A DNA stretch of 64,000 nucleotides from sequence record MG655269.1; one strand, written 5' to 3'. The notes below the pieces were generated by a model. It made no database searches, had not been told where the DNA came from, and saw only the letters and a list, made by a program, of their open reading frames with translations. A program made the position numbers and the translations under genes. Positions 4,038 to 53,826 of this stretch are shown piece after piece (position 1 is the first letter of the stretch; each line of letters opens with the position of its first letter).

Positions 4038-4061
4038 GGCAAGCGCGTTATACCGCTAACT

Positions 4062-4092
4062 GGAGGAGGGGAATCCCCTCCTCTTTATGCCG
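4062..4092 (+). terminator. hairpin + TTATGCCG terminator
   Basis: GGAGGAGGGG-AAT-CCCCTCCTCT stem then TTATGCCG. Confidence 0.8.
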
Positions 4093-4108
4093 CCCTAGAT
4101 TTTACCAG

Positions 4109-4128
4109 ACCTATATTACCCTTGTGAT
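4109..4128 (+). promoter_or_regulatory. putative phage early (vRNAP) promoter
   Basis: ACCTATATTAC-CCTT-GTGAT; contains the phiKZ early consensus TATATTAC. Confidence 0.75.
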
Positions 4129-4210
4129 CTCTGTAGAAATAAACGGAATCACCCAGTCTTATAACCCGCTGACCAAACCGAGTGTCGGCTAAACAAAAAG
4201 AGGAAATACC

Positions 4211-4912
4211 ATGACTACCCGTAAGATTGCTCGCTTAGACAAACTCGCTAAATTTGTAAACGACAATTTTGATCGTGATTACAACCTGCCATTTGCGATC
4301 GAGATCGAACAGCATGAAGATAAGTGGCACGGTGTTCGATACAGCCTCAACCTGACTCAGCCAGAGTGTGACGGTAGTCCTGTAAAAACGTTATTCCGTT
4401 CGAAGATGTTACCGGCTGAATTCGTTGGTGATCGGTTTACACGGCTAGAAGGCAGTGTGGCCGGAATGGCATCTGGGATTGAACTCCTGGGACAAGTTGC
4501 CTGGTACTGGATGTTATCAGAGGCAAACGACACTGATCGCGAATTGGGTGTGCAGGTAGCGTTGATGGCCTGGGATGCCTGGACACTGGCAACCGCCATA
4601 TTTGATGGCTCTAAGGCCCGTGATCTCTTCGAGCGTGACGATTTCCTTTGCCCTGGCGTAACACTGAATCAGCACGTCCTGTGCGAAAAGTTTGTCAGAA
4701 TGGATCGTGAAGTATGGCTAAAGCGTCGCACTAAACTGCTCGATGATGTTGTGGTTATTGAAAGTCGCTGGACCTTCGTAAAACAATATATCGGGGCAGG
4801 TGGCCTGGGTCATGAAGAGAAACACACTGTCGCCGAGGTTACCAAACGCAGGCAAGCACCGGCGCCTTTTGAAATTATCTTTAAGGCCAAATCGTCTCCT
4901 TTTAATCCATGA
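4211..4912 (+). CDS. hypothetical early protein
   Basis: 233-aa ORF, RBS GAGGA, first gene after promoter motif. Confidence 0.75.
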   Translation: MTTRKIARLDKLAKFVNDNFDRDYNLPFAIEIEQHEDKWHGVRYSLNLTQPECDGSPVKTLFRSKMLPAEFVGDRFTRLEGSVAGMASGIELLGQVAWYWMLSEANDTDRELGVQVALMAWDAWTLATAIFDGSKARDLFERDDFLCPGVTLNQHVLCEKFVRMDREVWLKRRTKLLDDVVVIESRWTFVKQYIGAGGLGHEEKHTVAEVTKRRQAPAPFEIIFKAKSSPFNP

Positions 4913-5029: not shown

Positions 5030-5500
5030 ATGAGTGAAATCACGTTTAAAGACGCGCGGTATTACGACCTGATTACCAAAGAACAATTGCAGCCTGGACA
5101 CACCATTCTGTTGAGCCTCAAAGGGCAACCAGCGGGCGTCATGACCCCAGCAGTACAGTGGACTAAAGACAACCTGGAAAACGCGGTCGTGGTGTACGGT
5201 ACGGTTGACGATCTGCAATCAATCCGTAAAGAGATCAGCAGTTGCGATCAACCGGTAGCTGTGGTCCTTACCGGCGGCTACCATGCAACGTATGAACTTA
5301 CTCACTGGGCACGGGAAAACAACGTAGTGGTGTTCCTGGCTTCAGATACCAATGCACCGCGTCCACGTTATGCGATACTGCTCGGTACCTGTCTGATCCA
5401 GCTGACTTATGATCATACTGGTCGAGTGAGTTCTGCTACCGCCATTCGTAATCAAGCAACCGCATCAGGCTGGGTGATTGACTTCACCACTGACGCATAA
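5030..5500 (+). CDS. hypothetical protein
   Basis: 156-aa ORF with RBS AAGGGA. Confidence 0.7.
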   Translation: MSEITFKDARYYDLITKEQLQPGHTILLSLKGQPAGVMTPAVQWTKDNLENAVVVYGTVDDLQSIRKEISSCDQPVAVVLTGGYHATYELTHWARENNVVVFLASDTNAPRPRYAILLGTCLIQLTYDHTGRVSSATAIRNQATASGWVIDFTTDA

Positions 5501-5539
5501 CTCCTTATTCATCCAATTAATTTAACCTGAGGTAATATC

Positions 5540-6145
5540 ATGCAACTTCATCAATACGTCGCCCTCTTACTCGGTGTGGGTTTAATCACGATCATTCTCG
5601 TTATGCTGGTCGGTTGGCTCGTGCTTGAAAACCAACGCAAATACGCCGCATTCCAACGGGTGCGTTACGAAAACATGCTGCGCTATCGCCTGACCGATTT
5701 CAGCAACCAGGTGACGGCAGATCTCTCGGCCATGTTCCTGCGCTATTTACTCTCCCCGCGGGTTGGTGGTACTGAGCGGGTGAGTGTAGAGGCAATAGCC
5801 GGTACCGTCCAGGGTATGCTGCAAGCGATCGCTGCTCACCACAACCATGAGTTTAAAAGCTCAGAGGTCGGTGATACGTTACTGGGTCTGTTGATTAAAG
5901 AGGTCTCTTATGAAACACAGAGCGACCGCATCATCTTTACCTTGACACGTCCAGGTGCCACGAACCTCACTTATACTCTGACACACCCCGAAGCGTACGG
6001 TTCGATGCTCTGCTGTGAGCTGGAAGACTATCGCATGCGTCTGCGTGACCGCGCAACCCTGCAGATCAAGCGTGAGCTCGATCAGGCACCGCAAACGTAT
6101 AAAGCCGCCTTCCCTAACTCGGAGCGGATTAATACCACTGCGTAA
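5540..6145 (+). CDS. N-terminally membrane-anchored hypothetical protein (paralog family)
   Basis: RBS GAGGT; TM segment VALLLGVGLITIILVMLVGWLVL. Confidence 0.75.
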   Translation: MQLHQYVALLLGVGLITIILVMLVGWLVLENQRKYAAFQRVRYENMLRYRLTDFSNQVTADLSAMFLRYLLSPRVGGTERVSVEAIAGTVQGMLQAIAAHHNHEFKSSEVGDTLLGLLIKEVSYETQSDRIIFTLTRPGATNLTYTLTHPEAYGSMLCCELEDYRMRLRDRATLQIKRELDQAPQTYKAAFPNSERINTTA

Positions 6146-47008: not shown

Positions 47009-47082
47009 TGAACACCCGTTTTGGTAATTTATTACGTAGTTGATCAATTATAAGAGAGATATTGTTTATTCGAGGGTGTTTC

Positions 47083-48603
47083 ATGGACAAGTTACCAAGT
47101 ACCGCACTGCCAAAGGTGTCAATGGTTTTATACACCGATGGCGGTTGTCGTCAAAACATCGGAGGCTGGGGAATACATGGTTATTCCTGGCTGGTTGAAG
47201 ACGATGACAAAAAGAAAAAGAAAAAGCCGGCGCGTGACGTCCCGTCAACGACTGGCTACATTGTAAAAGACGATCCGAAACTCGACAGTCGTGAAGTGGT
47301 CAGGCCCCACGAAGTGATTGAAGGGTTTGGTGGGATTTTACCTAACACCACAAATAACGTTGCGGAACTCACAGCAACTATTAATGGTATTGACTTAGCA
47401 CTGCAGCAGAACACAGAAAAGCTCCTCGTCATCTCCGATTCCAAATATGTCGGCGACAATGCAAAGAACCAATTGCATCGTTGGATGAAAGCCGGCTGGA
47501 AGAAAGCGGATGGCGGGGATGTTGCCAACAAAGAGCTGTGGGAAACCCTCAGCAGCAAACTTGATGAGCTAAAATACCGCGGTATCTCGTTTGACATCGA
47601 ATGGCTGAAAGGGCATGCGGGTCACCGTGGAAATCAGTTCGCTGACTACATGGCAACCCGTGGTGTCTTTAAAGGCCGTGTTGGTGACGCTACCCCGTAT
47701 TATCAGATCCAGGATGCCGGTGAGTACGATAAGTACAAAACTGAACGTCCGCGCTTTGTCACGCACTCGCGCTGGTACTTCACGTTACAGACTGAAAAGT
47801 TGATGAACAAGAATGAACAGGGCTTGTACGAGTATTGCTTTGGCCACCCAAGCAAAGGGGACGCTGATCAGCAGTACTTAGGCAAAGCGTTAGCCGACAC
47901 CGCCTTTAGCGTGGTGTGGTTGAAAGCACCTGAAGAGTGTTTGGATCTGGTTTATTCACGCACCAAAGAGATCGCTACCGACGTTTACGGTAACGCCTTC
48001 ATTGGCCGCTTGGATAACATTTACAACTCATTCATTCACAAAGAGATCATGGACTACGGCGGGTCGTTATTGCAACGTGCGAATAAGTACAACAATGACA
48101 TCACCAACTGTACCGATGCTCAAGTGGTGCGTGAGTGTAACCCGCCAGGTATCTCTTACCGGGCACTGTCGAATTTAGGACAGCTTAGTAAGATCCTGAA
48201 TGAATTTGTCAGCGACAGTTTACCTGCAACAACCAGGGTGGTAGAGATTACTGACAAAATCTACCAGACCGTGAAAGGTAAGAAAGAAGATAAGCTGGCC
48301 TTGCTCGGTTCGATTCGTCAAACCGACAAAGCGCTCAAGTTCGATGTACCGTGTGACGTACTCGACAAAGCGATCTCCGTCGAAGTTACAGCCACGCTTG
48401 GATTGACCTTACCTAACCGTAATACGTTAAACGGTCTTACGGAACTCAATCCAAAGGTATACCTGTTCTTGACAAAAGAGTCCGACATTGCATTTCGCTA
48501 CGGATCGATTGTGGTATGCGATGAAGGGTATTGCATCATGGCCAACGTATACGCTGACCTGCGTACGCTGTCAAAAAAGGATCTGGAGCGTTGCGGGCAG
48601 TAA
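47083..48603 (+). CDS. rnhA: ribonuclease HI with C-terminal extension (phiKZ gp155-like)
   Basis: YTDGGC, TNNVAEL, ISDSKYV, GWKK..VANKELW, KGHAGHRGNQFAD. Confidence 0.92.
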   Translation: MDKLPSTALPKVSMVLYTDGGCRQNIGGWGIHGYSWLVEDDDKKKKKKPARDVPSTTGYIVKDDPKLDSREVVRPHEVIEGFGGILPNTTNNVAELTATINGIDLALQQNTEKLLVISDSKYVGDNAKNQLHRWMKAGWKKADGGDVANKELWETLSSKLDELKYRGISFDIEWLKGHAGHRGNQFADYMATRGVFKGRVGDATPYYQIQDAGEYDKYKTERPRFVTHSRWYFTLQTEKLMNKNEQGLYEYCFGHPSKGDADQQYLGKALADTAFSVVWLKAPEECLDLVYSRTKEIATDVYGNAFIGRLDNIYNSFIHKEIMDYGGSLLQRANKYNNDITNCTDAQVVRECNPPGISYRALSNLGQLSKILNEFVSDSLPATTRVVEITDKIYQTVKGKKEDKLALLGSIRQTDKALKFDVPCDVLDKAISVEVTATLGLTLPNRNTLNGLTELNPKVYLFLTKESDIAFRYGSIVVCDEGYCIMANVYADLRTLSKKDLERCGQ

Positions 48604-49898: not shown

Positions 49899-51284
49899 AT
49901 GTTGTCATTCGGTGAATTTGTTGAGAAGTCACGCCCTATTCGACCTTTCTTGAATATCGGCGCGGGCTTTGATATCCCAACCGGTAGCTATCGTTTCGGT
50001 AAGCACGGTGAATCTATTCTTAATGGTGGTCTGGCGCCATTCATTGCGATCGTTGGTAAAGGCAACACCTTTAAAACAGCGATCGGTTGTTTCATGATGA
50101 CCCGCGTGCTGGAGCGCTACAATAACTCTAACGGTCTCCACTACGATACCGAGTGTACGTTCAGTGCCGATCGTCTTACCAGTCTTACCAGTCGTCTGGG
50201 TCCGAATGCTGCTGCAGAGTGGCTGGCCAACGAACGTATCTACCTGACTGATGACTCCATCATTAAAGGTAACCAGTGGTTTAAGAAATCGGTGCAGGAA
50301 TACTCCGAAGCGAAGAAGAAAGCCAAAATGGGCACGCTGCCGTTTGTGGATAAAGATGGGAACTTAATCCCGTATCCATACCCGACAGTCAACTTTGGCG
50401 ATTCCATGTCTGAGATGAAATTCGACGATCTGGAAAAGAACTACGCCAAGATGGAAATCGGCCAGGGTGAAATGCAAACGGAAGCCATGCGTGTGTCGAA
50501 TGCCAAACGCATGTTAATCGAAAAGACCCAGGGTTACGCCAACGCCGGCGGCATGTATGTCATCATGACAGCGCACTTAGGTAAAGAGCTGAACATGGAT
50601 GGTAAACCACAAGAGAAGAAAACCACCTTTATGAAACAAGGTGACAAAATCTCTAAGGTGCCTTCACAGATCCTCTCTCTGCCAAACAACGCCTGGGAGA
50701 TCTCTACCGGTACGGTGTTGATTGATAAGAACACCAAAGAGTGGATGTACCCGAAACAGGGTCGCAATGACGTGGATACCAACGGTAACCCGGACATGAT
50801 CACTCTGGTGGCGAAGAACCTGCGCGGGAAGAATGGTCCGTCTGGTGTGCCGTGGGAATTCGTGATGTCACAGTCTGAAGGCCTGCTGCCGTCCCTGACT
50901 GAGTTCCATTACATTAAGAACAACGGTCGTTATGGCCTGGGTGGCAATGACCGTAATTATTATGTTGAATTGTGCCCAGATATCAAGCTGCAGCGCACCA
51001 CCGTGCGTGATCGCATCGACGACAACCCTGAGTTACGTCGGGCATTAGAGATCACCATGGAGATGTGTCAGATGCGTTTCCTGTGGCACACCCGCGATCC
51101 AAAGTACAACATGACTCCTCAGGAACTGCGTGAAGGCCTGGAGAAGAAAGGGTACAAATGGGATCAGCTGCTCAACACCCGTGGGTTCTGGACGTTTGAA
51201 GAAGACAACCATCCATTACCATTCTTAAGCACAATGGATCTACTCCGCATGTATCATGATGAGTATCGCCCATACTGGCTGTAA
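49899..51284 (+). CDS. uvsX: UvsX/RecA-like recombinase (phiKZ gp152-like)
   Basis: IVGKGNTFKT P-loop, YDTE, FGDSMS, IMTAH, KNLRGKNG. Confidence 0.8.
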   Translation: MLSFGEFVEKSRPIRPFLNIGAGFDIPTGSYRFGKHGESILNGGLAPFIAIVGKGNTFKTAIGCFMMTRVLERYNNSNGLHYDTECTFSADRLTSLTSRLGPNAAAEWLANERIYLTDDSIIKGNQWFKKSVQEYSEAKKKAKMGTLPFVDKDGNLIPYPYPTVNFGDSMSEMKFDDLEKNYAKMEIGQGEMQTEAMRVSNAKRMLIEKTQGYANAGGMYVIMTAHLGKELNMDGKPQEKKTTFMKQGDKISKVPSQILSLPNNAWEISTGTVLIDKNTKEWMYPKQGRNDVDTNGNPDMITLVAKNLRGKNGPSGVPWEFVMSQSEGLLPSLTEFHYIKNNGRYGLGGNDRNYYVELCPDIKLQRTTVRDRIDDNPELRRALEITMEMCQMRFLWHTRDPKYNMTPQELREGLEKKGYKWDQLLNTRGFWTFEEDNHPLPFLSTMDLLRMYHDEYRPYWL

Positions 51285-51364
51285 GTGTACCCACTGTGGG
51301 AGAGGGTTATCCCTCTCCTTCTTATACCGTCAGTAGAGGGAAATAAGCTAATAGGAAGCAGTAT

Positions 51365-51784
51365 ATGCTTAACAAAGAAATACGCATTGTCGTTGCGTCG
51401 ACTAAAGGTTTCAACGACGCAGAGCGTTTAAAACTGACTATTGACGGCCTCCTGGAAGATATCTACTACCTCAACGAAGGGGTAGGTGATGAGGACGAGG
51501 AGTTGATCACTGATGCCAAGATCGTTTTCATCACCAATGGCGAACACAAAACAGCGGCTGAGTTACTGCCTGGTGTGTTGGGTGATCGGAACATCGACAT
51601 CGAAGTGATCAAGGTTGATTGGTCAAAAGGTAAGAAAGCGTTTTTTGATAACTGCGCTGTATTGGGTGCGAAGTCGACCCACGGCGTCATTTTTACGGAC
51701 AGCAAAGATGACGGGATGCAGACACTGCTGAAAGCATGTCTCGATGCCGGCTCACGCGTTCGTACTTATAGCTCTGCTATTTGA
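51365..51784 (+). CDS. SLOG-fold (YspA/DUF2493-like) protein, divergent
   Basis: IVVAST.GFND.ERL...D.L, KIVFITNG, V.W..G..AF, VIF.D..D.G...L pattern. Confidence 0.6.
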   Translation: MLNKEIRIVVASTKGFNDAERLKLTIDGLLEDIYYLNEGVGDEDEELITDAKIVFITNGEHKTAAELLPGVLGDRNIDIEVIKVDWSKGKKAFFDNCAVLGAKSTHGVIFTDSKDDGMQTLLKACLDAGSRVRTYSSAI

Positions 51785-51797
51785 GAAAGGTAACCCC

Positions 51798-52244
51798 ATG
51801 ATAGCCTCAGAAGCTCACGTTAGTATACTTGACGTTAATGTCACCCACGTTATATGCACAGTTAATTGCGAAGGGCATATGGGTCGTGGCATAGCCTTGT
51901 ATCTGCGTAAGTGTATTCCGGGGCTATATGAGCGGTATAAACACCTGTGCAGTTTAGGGATCATCACGGTAGACAAACTCTGGATCTACCCATCACACCC
52001 CCGTCAGATTCTCTGCTTTCCAACCAAAGATAAAACCTGGGAAGACAGCAAGCTTGAATGGATCGAAGCCAATCTCATAAAGCTTCGTGACAACTACAAA
52101 ACAAAAGGCATTGTCTCTGTGGCGATGCCTCCTCTTGGATGTGGAAACGGTAACCTAAAGTGGGATGAGGTGCGGAGCCTCATTTATGCCATCTTGGGCG
52201 ATTGTGACCTTGAAGTCCACATCTGTTTAGGTAAACCGAAGTGA
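51798..52244 (+). CDS. DarG-type macrodomain ADP-ribosylhydrolase
   Basis: TVNCEGHMGRGIAL, Y...C..G, CFPTK, SKLEWI...L, SVAMPPLGCGNG.L.W..V. Confidence 0.88.
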   Translation: MIASEAHVSILDVNVTHVICTVNCEGHMGRGIALYLRKCIPGLYERYKHLCSLGIITVDKLWIYPSHPRQILCFPTKDKTWEDSKLEWIEANLIKLRDNYKTKGIVSVAMPPLGCGNGNLKWDEVRSLIYAILGDCDLEVHICLGKPK

Positions 52245-52273
52245 GGGAATCACCCTGAATAGGAGCCAGTATT

Positions 52274-53155
52274 ATGTCTGATAACACACGCGTTTTACCC
52301 GATCCACGCGAAGATGGCAAGACGCACATCAACGTCTATAGCCGTGGCGCTACGTGGTTAGGACAGCAGCTTTCTAATATGTCCTACTACGACTTCGCAC
52401 ATCCACGCTACGGCGTGTTCGCCTCGTTGGAGGGCTTCTGGTATTGGTTGTCTACGGGCAAGCAACACGAGGAGTTACGGAAGCTTGCCGGGGTCAAAGC
52501 GAAAATGACCGGCCGGGAGTTCGAGACGATCCCAAATGAAAACTTTGAAGAAGAGTTCAAAGAAGCCATGCGTCTGCGTCTGGAGCAACACCCGATCATT
52601 GCTAACGCCCTGGCTGAATCGTTACTGCCGTTAAAGCACTACTATTGTTACGGTGGGAAAGTGATCGACTTGTATGACCGCCACAAATGGCAAATGGACT
52701 TCTACGAGGAGTGGCGTAAAGCCAATGCCCCCGAAGACACCACCTTGGTATTGTTGATCTCTGGCTCACGTAAAGAGAAAGACTACGACGCCTTTAAGCA
52801 CATCGTGATGACCTACCTGCAACCGTATATCGACAAGATAAAGGACACGTACAAAATCACCCTGCTTTCGGGGCTCGCCTGGGAAGGTCCCGATGACATG
52901 GCAATTCGTCTGTGTCGGGAAGAAGGCTTCATGTTGATTGGTCTGCCGGCGAAGTGGAAAGAGCAAGGCAAGGCCGCGGGCATGATCCGCAATGGTGCCA
53001 TGGGGCGGTTGTGTAACAAGGCTTTGGTGTTCTGGGATGGCGAGTCACCGGGGACAAAAGGGATGATTGATTACCTGAAGAAAAATACTATAGACCATCT
53101 TGTGTATTTACACGGTAAACATGAACCTGACTGGAAAGCCCCGGAGACATCATGA
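52274..53155 (+). CDS. NADAR (T4 gp30.3-like) domain fused to a SLOG (YspA-like) domain
   Basis: N-terminal LSNM, FASLEGF, L.G.KAK..G, ALAES..LKH; C-terminal ISGSR...DY, SGLA.GPD.MA, W...GKAAGMIRN..M, FWDG.S.GTKGMI. Confidence 0.75.
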   Translation: MSDNTRVLPDPREDGKTHINVYSRGATWLGQQLSNMSYYDFAHPRYGVFASLEGFWYWLSTGKQHEELRKLAGVKAKMTGREFETIPNENFEEEFKEAMRLRLEQHPIIANALAESLLPLKHYYCYGGKVIDLYDRHKWQMDFYEEWRKANAPEDTTLVLLISGSRKEKDYDAFKHIVMTYLQPYIDKIKDTYKITLLSGLAWEGPDDMAIRLCREEGFMLIGLPAKWKEQGKAAGMIRNGAMGRLCNKALVFWDGESPGTKGMIDYLKKNTIDHLVYLHGKHEPDWKAPETS

Positions 53156-53826
53156 CCCCAGCACGCGAACAGACCCAGCAATTTGTGATCGAGGCTATTG
53201 CTGAGATTCTACCCGGTTCTAAGAACCGGGATATCTATATCGACTTCTTCTCGCGGTTGAGCGATGAGGCGTTTGATGCCCTGATGCAGCGGATGGATGA
53301 AGACCAGGAGATCTTCCCCTTCTACCATCCGAACTTTACCGGTACGGTAATTGATGTTGAACGTGTGATCAAGTTAATTGAAAAGCACGGCGACACCATC
53401 ATGGAGCAGCTCTGGGATATCGACCCGGAAACCGGACTGCAGTACCTGACCCCGTTGAAGTATCCGGTGCTGTTACTTCCGCTGCGTATTCAGCAGCAGA
53501 AGCTGCAGAAGAAGATGTCGATTCCAAAAGACAACAACCACATCGACGATTTGACTAACCAGCCCACCACCGAATCCAAAGGGGCTTCTTTGTCTTACCC
53601 GGAAGTGCAGATCATCTATGCCATGGGTGGTGACAAGATTCTGGAAGAGACCATGAAGGTCCGTGGTGGTGATGAGAAGGCGTTTCGTGATTACAATAAC
53701 GAAATCATTGCAAGCGGCGGTGTCACCATTGGTGCAATCAGCAGCAGCAAGACCAAGGTGAAGTCCACCAAAACCGTGCAAGTGATTCTTGAGGCCATGC
53801 ACCTGAGCAACAACCTGGCCAGTTAA
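53152..53826 (+). CDS. virion RNA polymerase beta subunit, C-terminal part (phiKZ gp149/SPN3US gp218-like)
   Basis: QQQKLQKK, DDLTNQP, SKG..LSYPE...YAMG....EE..KVRGGD align with the RpoB C-terminal region. Confidence 0.8.
   Translation: MTPAREQTQQFVIEAIAEILPGSKNRDIYIDFFSRLSDEAFDALMQRMDEDQEIFPFYHPNFTGTVIDVERVIKLIEKHGDTIMEQLWDIDPETGLQYLTPLKYPVLLLPLRIQQQKLQKKMSIPKDNNHIDDLTNQPTTESKGASLSYPEVQIIYAMGGDKILEETMKVRGGDEKAFRDYNNEIIASGGVTIGAISSSKTKVKSTKTVQVILEAMHLSNNLAS

Follow-up and report, generated by a model that had tools for sequence, protein, structure and literature searches.

What are three small genes doing between a recombinase gene and a polymerase gene in a phage that builds a nucleus around its DNA? 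The question is raised by positions 51,365 to 53,155 of a stretch of 64,000 nucleotides (nt) from sequence record MG655269.1, the window of this study, which belongs to Erwinia phage vB_EamM_MadMel, a RAY-like chimallivirus. An initial annotation, made from the letters alone, described the three genes as a cassette of ADP-ribose erasers, in which a SLOG gene is followed by a gene for a DarG-type macrodomain and by a gene that fuses a NADAR to a second SLOG domain. In our opinion the domain assignments of that description are right, and we lean, if only slightly, towards the view that the three genes form an accessory counter-defence module that would remove DarT-type ADP-ribose from phage DNA within the chimallivirus nucleus. 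The three open reading frames (ORFs) are co-directional and lie exactly where the initial annotation had placed them; lengths are in amino acids (aa):

51365-51784, plus strand: ORF1, 139 aa
51798-52244, plus strand: ORF2, 148 aa from the ATG at 51798
52274-53155, plus strand: ORF3, 293 aa
52274-52729, plus strand: predicted N-terminal NADAR domain of ORF3, aa 1-152
52730-53155, plus strand: predicted C-terminal SLOG domain of ORF3, aa 153-293 plus the stop codon

ORF2 can be classified from its sequence as an orphan DarG2-type macrodomain and an ortholog of AdfM, the anti-DarT factor macro of PhiKZ (gp104), PhiPA3 (gp108) and Asesino (gp217) (Morgan et al., Cell Rep 2026; PMC13309987). It matches the NCBIfam model antitoxin_DarG (NF048014; E 1.2e-37), the DarG model of PADLOC (E 8.6e-41) and the PDB entry 5m3i (E 1e-22) far beyond chance; a second PDB entry, 5m31, follows at E 8e-21, and Pfam Macro at E 1e-9. 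The two structures are DarG macrodomains from M. tuberculosis and T. aquaticus, and the FPTK motif is in register with them. Identity to PhiPA3 gp108 is 35% (E 1e-22). The catalytic Asn23 (51864-51866) and Lys77 of FPTK (residues 74-77; the lysine codon at 52026-52028) align with their counterparts in the DarG structures as well as in PhiPA3 AdfM, and correspond to N22 and K80 of the T. aquaticus protein, whose roles are described in PMC13309987. A C-terminal DarT2-binding domain was not found in ORF2: only positions 8-145 of the 338 positions of NF048014 are matched, with a score of 129.9 bits where the cut-off is 250. The RAY ortholog, gp152, carries the annotation 'putative phosphatase'.

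What AdfM does is known from experiment. The PhiKZ protein strips DarT2-attached ADP-ribose from DNA in vitro and rescues cells from DarT2 toxicity, and PhiKZ and PhiPA3 deleted for AdfM were the means of demonstrating a protective effect against DarTG2; PhiKZ AdfM alone has been shown both to hydrolyse thymidine-linked ADP-ribose on single-stranded DNA (ssDNA) and to protect from DarTG2. Import into the phage nucleus is seen for AdfM and for homologs, one of them from an Erwinia phage (all PMC13309987). Close homology to these tested enzymes is the basis on which we predict that ORF2 hydrolyses thymidine-linked ADP-ribose, the product of DarT2.

ORF3 has two halves. The N-terminal half is, judged by profiles and by its predicted structure, a NADAR of the gp30.3/AdfN type with one altered active-site element. 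It matches phrog_652 at E 3.8e-36, again far beyond chance, and gp30.3 of phage T4 falls into the same family and the same profile region (E 9.2e-51). Compared directly with T4 gp30.3 by hhalign, the domain reaches 86-89% probability with E 3-5e-6 (profile against sequence), and in a MAFFT alignment the two run together from end to end. The signature of NADARs is a Ser-Glu-Lys triad with a further catalytic residue on the last strand, which is His in phage NADARs (PMC11125620, PMC12945103); the roles of the Ser and Glu are described in PMC12945103 and PMC11825919. All motifs that the initial annotation had named in the cassette are present, including the FPTK of ORF2, and those of the NADAR half are found at LSN 33-35, LEGF 52-55, G73..A76...G80 and LKH 120-122. 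In the set of 60 full-length relatives to which all such counts refer, Ser34 is Ser or Thr in 60 of 60; Glu53 (52430-52432), the equivalent of T4 E36, is kept in 59; and His122 (52637-52639), which lies on the last strand and aligns with the His of the T4 LKH, is kept in all 60. Lys77 of ORF3 is kept in 58, and its segment K77..G80-R81 aligns with the diphosphate-binding region of the P. nicotianae NADAR solved with ADP-ribose (PDB 8bau). A conserved cluster of Trp-Tyr-Trp (W56, Y57, W58) follows Glu53. The AlphaFold2 (AF2) model of ORF3 is confident, with a predicted local distance difference test (pLDDT) score of 91.9, and Foldseek places it on 8bau, the sole NADAR entry among its top matches, with probability 1.0, E 5.7e-3, a root-mean-square deviation of 2.9 Å over 111 columns and 22% identity.

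T4 gp30.3 is the protein named AdfN, which reverses the guanosine-linked ADP-ribose (G-ADPr) made by DarT1 (PMC11825919, PMC11543638), and two further phage NADARs also undo DarT1 G-ADPr (PMC11825919). What the initial annotation had taken as established, that DarG macrodomains reverse thymidine ADP-ribosylation and that NADARs such as T4 gp30.3 reverse that of guanosine, agrees with the literature on DarG2 and AdfM and on AdfN (the papers just cited). By its kinship with AdfN, ORF3 likely acts on G-ADPr as well, although this is not assured.

The C-terminal half of ORF3 was proposed to be a YspA-like SLOG, and it is indeed best classified, from sequence profiles and the model, as a SLOG domain of the YAcAr type. 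It matches phrog_289 at E 1.1e-20, far beyond chance. Pfam YAcAr finds it at E 1.3e-4 and 22.1 bits, under the cut-off of 28.2, and the same model matches 49 of the 60 relatives, with a best E of 1e-14. The loops of the fold are intact in ORF3 (G164-S-R166, G205-x-D207, R239-N240 and S258-x-G260-T261, with the motifs GSR at 164-166 and GESPGT at 256-261), and the residues of GSR, GxD, RN and SxGT are kept in 57-60 of 60 relatives. Foldseek with this domain returns ShosA (8zva, 2.4e-4), DprA (3uqz and 4ljk, about 2e-3) and the SLOG domain of ThsA (7uxs and 6lhx), and in BFVD many viral DUF2493/YAcAr proteins resemble it. N-glycosidases of the LOG type carry their catalytic Glu in a PGGxGTxxE motif. 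The corresponding motif of ORF3 reads GESPGTKGM, with Met264 at the position of the catalytic Glu. LOG-like catalysis by this domain was set aside on that account, and Met264 suggests to us a role in binding rather than hydrolysis.

Do these proteins work together? The initial annotation supposed a functional coupling of the genes. In Erwinia phage pEa_SNUABM_37 and in a 68-kb metagenomic contig, ORF2 and ORF3 occur as a single protein of 422-429 aa with the order Macro, NADAR and SLOG. The slot is the same, reading UvsX, a homolog of ORF1, the fused protein and polymerase beta. Residues 1-145 of the fused protein correspond to ORF2 (70% identity) and those from 148 onward to ORF3 (47%), with hardly any linker between them. 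Since the two are one polypeptide in sister phages, ORF2 and ORF3 may be expected to work together, and these gene fusions strongly support a functional coupling of the cassette genes.

The core of ORF3 is widespread. An exhaustive search yielded 5252 relatives of ORF3; among the best 150 clusters about 59 span both the NADAR-like and the SLOG domain; the core covers at least 59 clusters at 50% identity. Phage records with the N-domain alone number 535 and those with the macrodomain 261. Further partners among the 60 NADAR-SLOG fusions are DUF4326 (32 proteins), Macro (4) and a pyrimidine-dimer glycosylase of the T4 endonuclease V type (1). The last of these is a metagenomic protein of 548 aa (P0063) with the DNA glycosylase fused upstream of the NADAR-like and SLOG core, an arrangement that ties the module to the repair of DNA base lesions. 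Another metagenomic ORF (P0017, 683 aa) holds Macro, a GIY-YIG/I-TevI-like homing endonuclease, the NADAR-like domain and SLOG in one frame; the endonuclease has apparently entered in frame between macrodomain and NADAR, at the same junction that is split in MadMel.

The initial annotation also saw a second, divergent SLOG in ORF1, and by profile comparison ORF1 does appear to be a divergent paralogue of the YAcAr-type (Rossmannoid) SLOG. Compared with a SLOG profile built from the 60 fusion proteins, the ORF1 family scores 97.3% in hhalign (E 2.6e-11), again far beyond chance, over 122 columns, which is the whole domain. ORF1 alone matches phrog_289 at E 1.6e-6 and Pfam YAcAr at E 0.19, and two of its homologs carry PF10686. 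Against the lone C-domain sequence of ORF3 the hhalign probability is 5%, a single-sequence comparison that is resolved only by the 60-member profile. A direct PDB sequence search with ORF1 gave no meaningful match. Of the structure searches proposed for each domain, those with ORF3 returned the NADAR and SLOG folds, while that with ORF1 returned only generic Rossmannoid matches, which we do not use as evidence for SLOG; the ORF1 model, a Rossmannoid of five beta-alpha units, is of mediocre quality (pLDDT 66.5), and the search is uninformative for this reason. The orthologs of ORF1 are RAY gp151 and Rebecca gp152 (QBP07259.1), and the latter is the example of a YAcAr SLOG given in the 2021 paper of Iyer and colleagues (PMC7824862).

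Homologs of ORF1 are confined to this lineage of Erwinia phages, where they always stand directly upstream of the macrodomain gene. Phage AH06, a more distant Agricanvirus (locus L002), has two other small genes in its cassette region: gp159 (4052-4399, 115 aa), between the macrodomain and NADAR-SLOG genes, and gp161 (5284-5568, 94 aa), which is annotated 'RNA binding protein' and precedes the polymerase gene. No family and no cassette domain is matched by either of them, and the neighbours of distant DUF4326-NADAR-SLOG genes (loci L007 and L008) are likewise unrelated to any cassette domain; it is on this basis that we regard the ORF1-type SLOG as limited to the lineage of Erwinia phages. The protein encoded directly before AdfM in PhiPA3, gp107, was tried as an analogue of ORF1 and proved to be unrelated.

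One claim we cannot uphold is that the cassette belongs to the core genome. The core of the Chimalliviridae is defined as what is present in >90% of chimallin-encoding phages, and RAY gp153, to which ORF3 is 99% identical, is explicitly listed as non-core (PMC10299810). AdfM is present in about half of the chimalliviruses, and the macrodomain loci of PhiPA3, SPN3US and Huxley hold no cassette, the macrodomain being found by itself at another place in the genome. The cassette is an accessory one, specific to its lineage. RAY UvsX (gp150), on the other hand, is a core gene. In the same study a fusion of RAY gp153 to green fluorescent protein co-localises with the DNA of the phage inside the nucleus, like UvsX, and gp153 was read there as 'DprA' (Prichard et al., PMC10299810). 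The nuclear location of RAY gp153 and of the AdfM homologs favours work on DNA over cytoplasmic signals or sensing of the Thoeris type. As to a possible opponent in the host, DarTG is present in the E. amylovora pangenome (PMC13480210).

How would the module act? Host ADP-ribosyltransferases such as DarT would tag bases of ssDNA with ADP-ribose, and the module, expressed in our proposal as a tight co-directional unit beside uvsX, would strip it from phage DNA inside the nucleus. ORF2, as a macrodomain of the AdfM type, would clear thymidine-linked ADP-ribose, the DarT2 product. The NADAR of ORF3, a mechanistically unrelated hydrolase, would cleave N-glycosidic base-ADP-ribose, most likely that of guanine, the DarT1 product. 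The SLOG of ORF3 may serve for binding without catalysis, either keeping the enzyme attached to ssDNA or nucleotide ligands or capturing the released ADP-ribose; its nearest solved folds include the ssDNA-binding Rossmann domains of DprA, and its GSR loop is conserved. For ORF1 we can speculate about an accessory or regulatory partner, which is probably what it is. A dual activity against DarTG1 and DarTG2, as the initial annotation had it, is then a plausible and reasonable inference from the domains.

Several observations weigh against this proposal and should be set out together. The Lys of the NADAR triad, seven positions after the Glu, is K95 in E. coli C7 and K43 in T4, where it binds the diphosphate. 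ORF3 has Ser60 at this position, and its relatives have S in 26, A in 15, K in 7 and G in 5 cases out of 60; an alternative hhalign register puts the position near Lys63 of ORF3, which is K or R in only 31 of 60. With this Lys missing, the activity or the substrate of the ORF3 NADAR may differ. Pfam NADAR (PF08719) and Phage_30_3 (PF08010) do not match ORF3 at E <= 1, and among 15 stand-alone homologs of the N-domain these models give weak matches in two (0.0025 and 0.077). A direct PDB sequence search with ORF3 gave no meaningful match, a profile of the 15 N-domain homologs reaches 8bau only at E 0.065, and the profile of the 60 full-length relatives finds DprA-type SLOGs only and no NADAR in PDB. 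It is therefore PHROG 652 and the hhalign comparison with T4 gp30.3, and neither PDB nor Pfam, that link ORF3 to NADARs by sequence. T4 AdfN itself, taken outside its own phage context, does not rescue from DarT1 toxicity, so that NADAR activity in vitro is no guarantee of protection. ORF1 is acidic (isoelectric point 4.8), and several of its SLOG signature residues are replaced. DarTG is apparently rare in E. amylovora. Finally, DUF4326 is the commonest partner of NADAR-SLOG, with its 32 of 60 proteins, and is predicted by Aravind's group to be a phosphatase on soluble ADP-ribose (ADPr) products, and the ThsA-type SLOG, a fold match of ORF3, binds isomers of cyclic ADP-ribose (cADPR).

The last two points lead to a different explanation, developed by Iyer, Aravind and colleagues, in which Macro, NADAR, SLOG and the DUF4326 of the relatives degrade or sequester small signals derived from nicotinamide adenine dinucleotide (NAD), or toxic metabolites, for example cADPR isomers and ADPr-phosphates, with the SLOG domains as sensors or N-glycosidases. 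The prediction was published for precisely this set of domain combinations (PMC7824862, PMC9503650); the abundance of DUF4326 agrees with this explanation, as do the resemblance of the ORF3 SLOG to that of ThsA, a binder of 3'cADPR, and a neighbourhood of macrodomain and SLOG without NADAR in podophage SU10. We nevertheless consider it unlikely for this cassette, while taking it seriously: the macrodomain of ORF2 is a member of the DNA-directed DarG clade, homologs of AdfM and AdfN have been shown to act on ADP-ribosylated DNA, RAY gp153 and the AdfM homologs are nuclear and hence away from cytoplasmic host signalling, and the ORF3 SLOG has Met264 in place of the LOG catalytic Glu. The names given to the RAY and AH06 proteins, 'DprA-like' and 'DNA processing protein A', and the interpretation in PMC10299810 point elsewhere again, to a recombination mediator in which the SLOG/DprA-like domain of ORF3, and perhaps that of ORF1, binds ssDNA and loads the adjacent UvsX, the N-domain being an accessory. 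DprA is indeed among the best PDB matches of the ORF3 C-domain in both sequence and fold, the cassette lies immediately downstream of uvsX, and the ORF3 ortholog is nuclear. Yet Pfam DNA_processg_A (PF02481) does not match ORF3, where YAcAr does, and among the 60 relatives weak, overlapping DprA matches occur in 15 against the 49 with YAcAr, so that the similarity exists only at the level of the SLOG fold. The domain has about 140 aa, and ORF3 holds nothing beyond its two mapped domains and consequently none of the flanking domains of DprA; its fusion partners are a conserved NADAR active site and, in the sister phages, also a macrodomain of the DarG type; the family is found in phages away from any recombinase; and the acidity of ORF1 does not suit the role. 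Because the domain is YAcAr and not DprA, and is joined to conserved hydrolase active sites, we hold a DprA-like role in recombination to be improbable.

It may also be asked whether the adduct removed is the DarT1 product at all. NADARs also clear G-ADPr from RNA and some clear cytidine-linked ADP-ribose (C-ADPr) (PMC12945103), the Trp-rich, Lys-less pocket of ORF3 (W56, Y57, W58) suggests a shifted specificity, and transcription takes place in the phage nucleus; the substrate could accordingly be RNA or another adduct, such as C-ADPr, adenosine-linked ADP-ribose (A-ADPr) on messenger RNA (mRNA) or a modified tRNA. We give this little weight, seeing that the phage-type (His) NADARs that were tested are guanosine-specific on DNA, that the known defences by mRNA ADP-ribosylation are cytoplasmic, and that the fusion partners (DarG macrodomain, pyrimidine-dimer glycosylase) are directed to DNA. 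A related and somewhat less remote thought, still a doubtful one, is that the NADAR-SLOG protein is a distinct nuclear enzyme for an adduct that DarT1 does not make, for instance one left by a host ADP-ribosyltransferase that has yet to be characterised, or ADPr linked to C or A. The conserved Trp/Tyr-rich, Lys-less pocket and the obligatory SLOG partner could be the basis for this; the SLOG could then target ssDNA lesions or gate the activity via ADPr, and ORF1 could be a regulatory pseudo-SLOG. Our slight preference stays with the module that would remove DarT-type ADP-ribose from DNA.

Related genes are also met in other arrangements. In the Escherichia podophage SU10 (locus L012, 2495-3991) a DarG-like macrodomain with 43% identity to ORF2 precedes a gene annotated 'ECF sigma factor' and, after it, a SLOG. 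This stand-alone SLOG, two genes from the macrodomain and with no NADAR, is of the type of the ORF3 C-domain (hhalign 99.9%). Pseudanabaena phage Pam2 (locus L011, 5092-6025) has two tandem NADAR paralogues of the gp30.3 type, annotated YbiA, beside thymidylate synthase and about 3.5 kb from a macrodomain gene.

Bases 51200-53300 of the window are 98-99% identical to the genomes of RAY, Deimos-Minion, Simmy50, Rebecca, Special G and Ea35-70, which are, like MadMel, members of Agricanvirus and nucleus-forming chimalliviruses. The two flanking genes were named correctly in the initial annotation:

49899-51284, plus strand: upstream flank, UvsX/RecA-like recombinase (RAY gp150 ortholog; phrog_97 E 1.8e-56, RAY annotation)
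53152-53826, plus strand: downstream flank, virion RNA polymerase beta subunit fragment (RAY gp154 ortholog; phrog_3233 E 1.7e-99, annotation)

The gaps between uvsX and ORF1, ORF1 and ORF2, and ORF2 and ORF3 are 80, 13 and 29 nt, the stop of ORF3 shares 4 nt (ATGA) with the start of the next gene, and a purine-rich ribosome-binding site precedes ORF1, ORF2 and ORF3 alike. A longer ORF2 starting at 51744 was rejected, and the start was set at 51798, because the homologs and the fused gene begin at the equivalent of that position. Scans of the locus for sigma-70 promoters and terminators gave nothing above shuffled controls, and such scans are uninformative here because the phage uses its own RNA polymerases. 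Nearly identical contexts of translation initiation stand before ORF1 (51345-51367, AATAGGAAGCAGTATATG) and before ORF3 (52255-52276, AATAGGAGCCAGTATTATG); an element common to both, for regulation or ribosome binding, is one possible reading, and the trace of a duplication another. Just 3' of the uvsX stop, at 51300-51317, there is a small G+C-rich hairpin, GGGAGAGGGTTATCCCTCTCC, with a run rich in T behind it. Between uvsX and the cassette it may act as a weak terminator, or as a site of RNA processing; the scan yielded no more such sites than shuffled sequence does. Two genes upstream of uvsX (47062-48603) lies a gene for an RNase H-domain protein of 513 aa, far longer than an ordinary RNase H (Pfam RNase H E 3.8e-25; phrog_3265 'ribonuclease' E 3e-186).

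What would be learned if our proposal is true? The phage nucleus of RAY-like chimalliviruses would receive, by import, two ADP-ribose hydrolases unrelated to each other, and this would extend the finding made with AdfM that the nucleus needs an enzymatic back-up against DNA-modifying defences. The label of RAY gp153 would be corrected from 'DprA recombination protein' to an AdfN-like NADAR-SLOG fusion, and there would be a tractable entry to the function of the YAcAr SLOG, a very common and uncharacterised viral domain. The novelty is not dramatic. The initial annotation thought that the fusion and the double SLOG may be undescribed; on the contrary, Iyer, Burroughs, Anantharaman and Aravind had reported in 2021 and 2022 that large phages carry SLOG fused to, or in the neighbourhood of, Macro, NADAR and DUF4326 (PMC7824862, PMC9503650). 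The enzyme classes, their roles against DarTG and the domain fusions are already in the literature, and the gain is incremental. What appears not to have been stated before is that RAY gp153, the 'DprA', is a fusion of an AdfN-type NADAR and a SLOG, that it adjoins AdfM, which in sister phages is its fusion partner, and that this branch of NADARs is without the canonical Lys.

It remains to compare the cassette with the systems that are known. The published network of Iyer, Aravind and colleagues contains exactly these domains, with the same fusions and neighbourhoods in jumbo phages, and an ortholog of ORF1 is its own YAcAr example. It differs in predicting soluble ADPr derivatives as targets, whereas the later experiments with AdfM and AdfN and the nuclear RAY gp153 speak for DNA; the three genes as a unit, and their fusion and fission at one locus, were apparently not singled out in the literature. 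With AdfM, ORF2 shares its nature of a stand-alone chimallivirus macrodomain of the DarG2 type and the same catalytic Asn and Lys. Unlike the AdfM of PhiPA3, SPN3US and Huxley, which is alone in another neighbourhood, ORF2 has a SLOG gene and a NADAR-SLOG gene beside it in a cassette of three and is fused to the NADAR-SLOG protein in sister phages. AdfN and the N-domain of ORF3 are alike in belonging to PHROG 652, in aligning over their full length, and in having the Ser, the Glu (T4 E36, ORF3 E53) and the phage-type His of the last strand. T4 AdfN is, however, a bare core domain, while the two-domain ORF3 adds an N-terminal beta-strand extension (DGKTHINVYS), the WYW cluster and the C-terminal SLOG, and has no equivalent of T4 K43. 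The DarTG systems employ the same two hydrolase folds for G- and T-linked ADP-ribose on DNA, the NADAR in DarG1 and the macrodomain, joined to a DarT-binding domain, in DarG2. The MadMel cassette is accompanied by no toxin gene, ORF2 is without the DarT-binding C-terminal half of DarG2, and the NADAR of ORF3 is of the phage (His) type and not of the BC4488 (Asp) type. The SLOG domains of DprA, ShosA and ThsA, lastly, share with ORF3 the Rossmannoid SLOG fold and loops of the GSR and GxSxGT types, and the domain of ORF3 differs from them in its place in the YAcAr family rather than with DprA.

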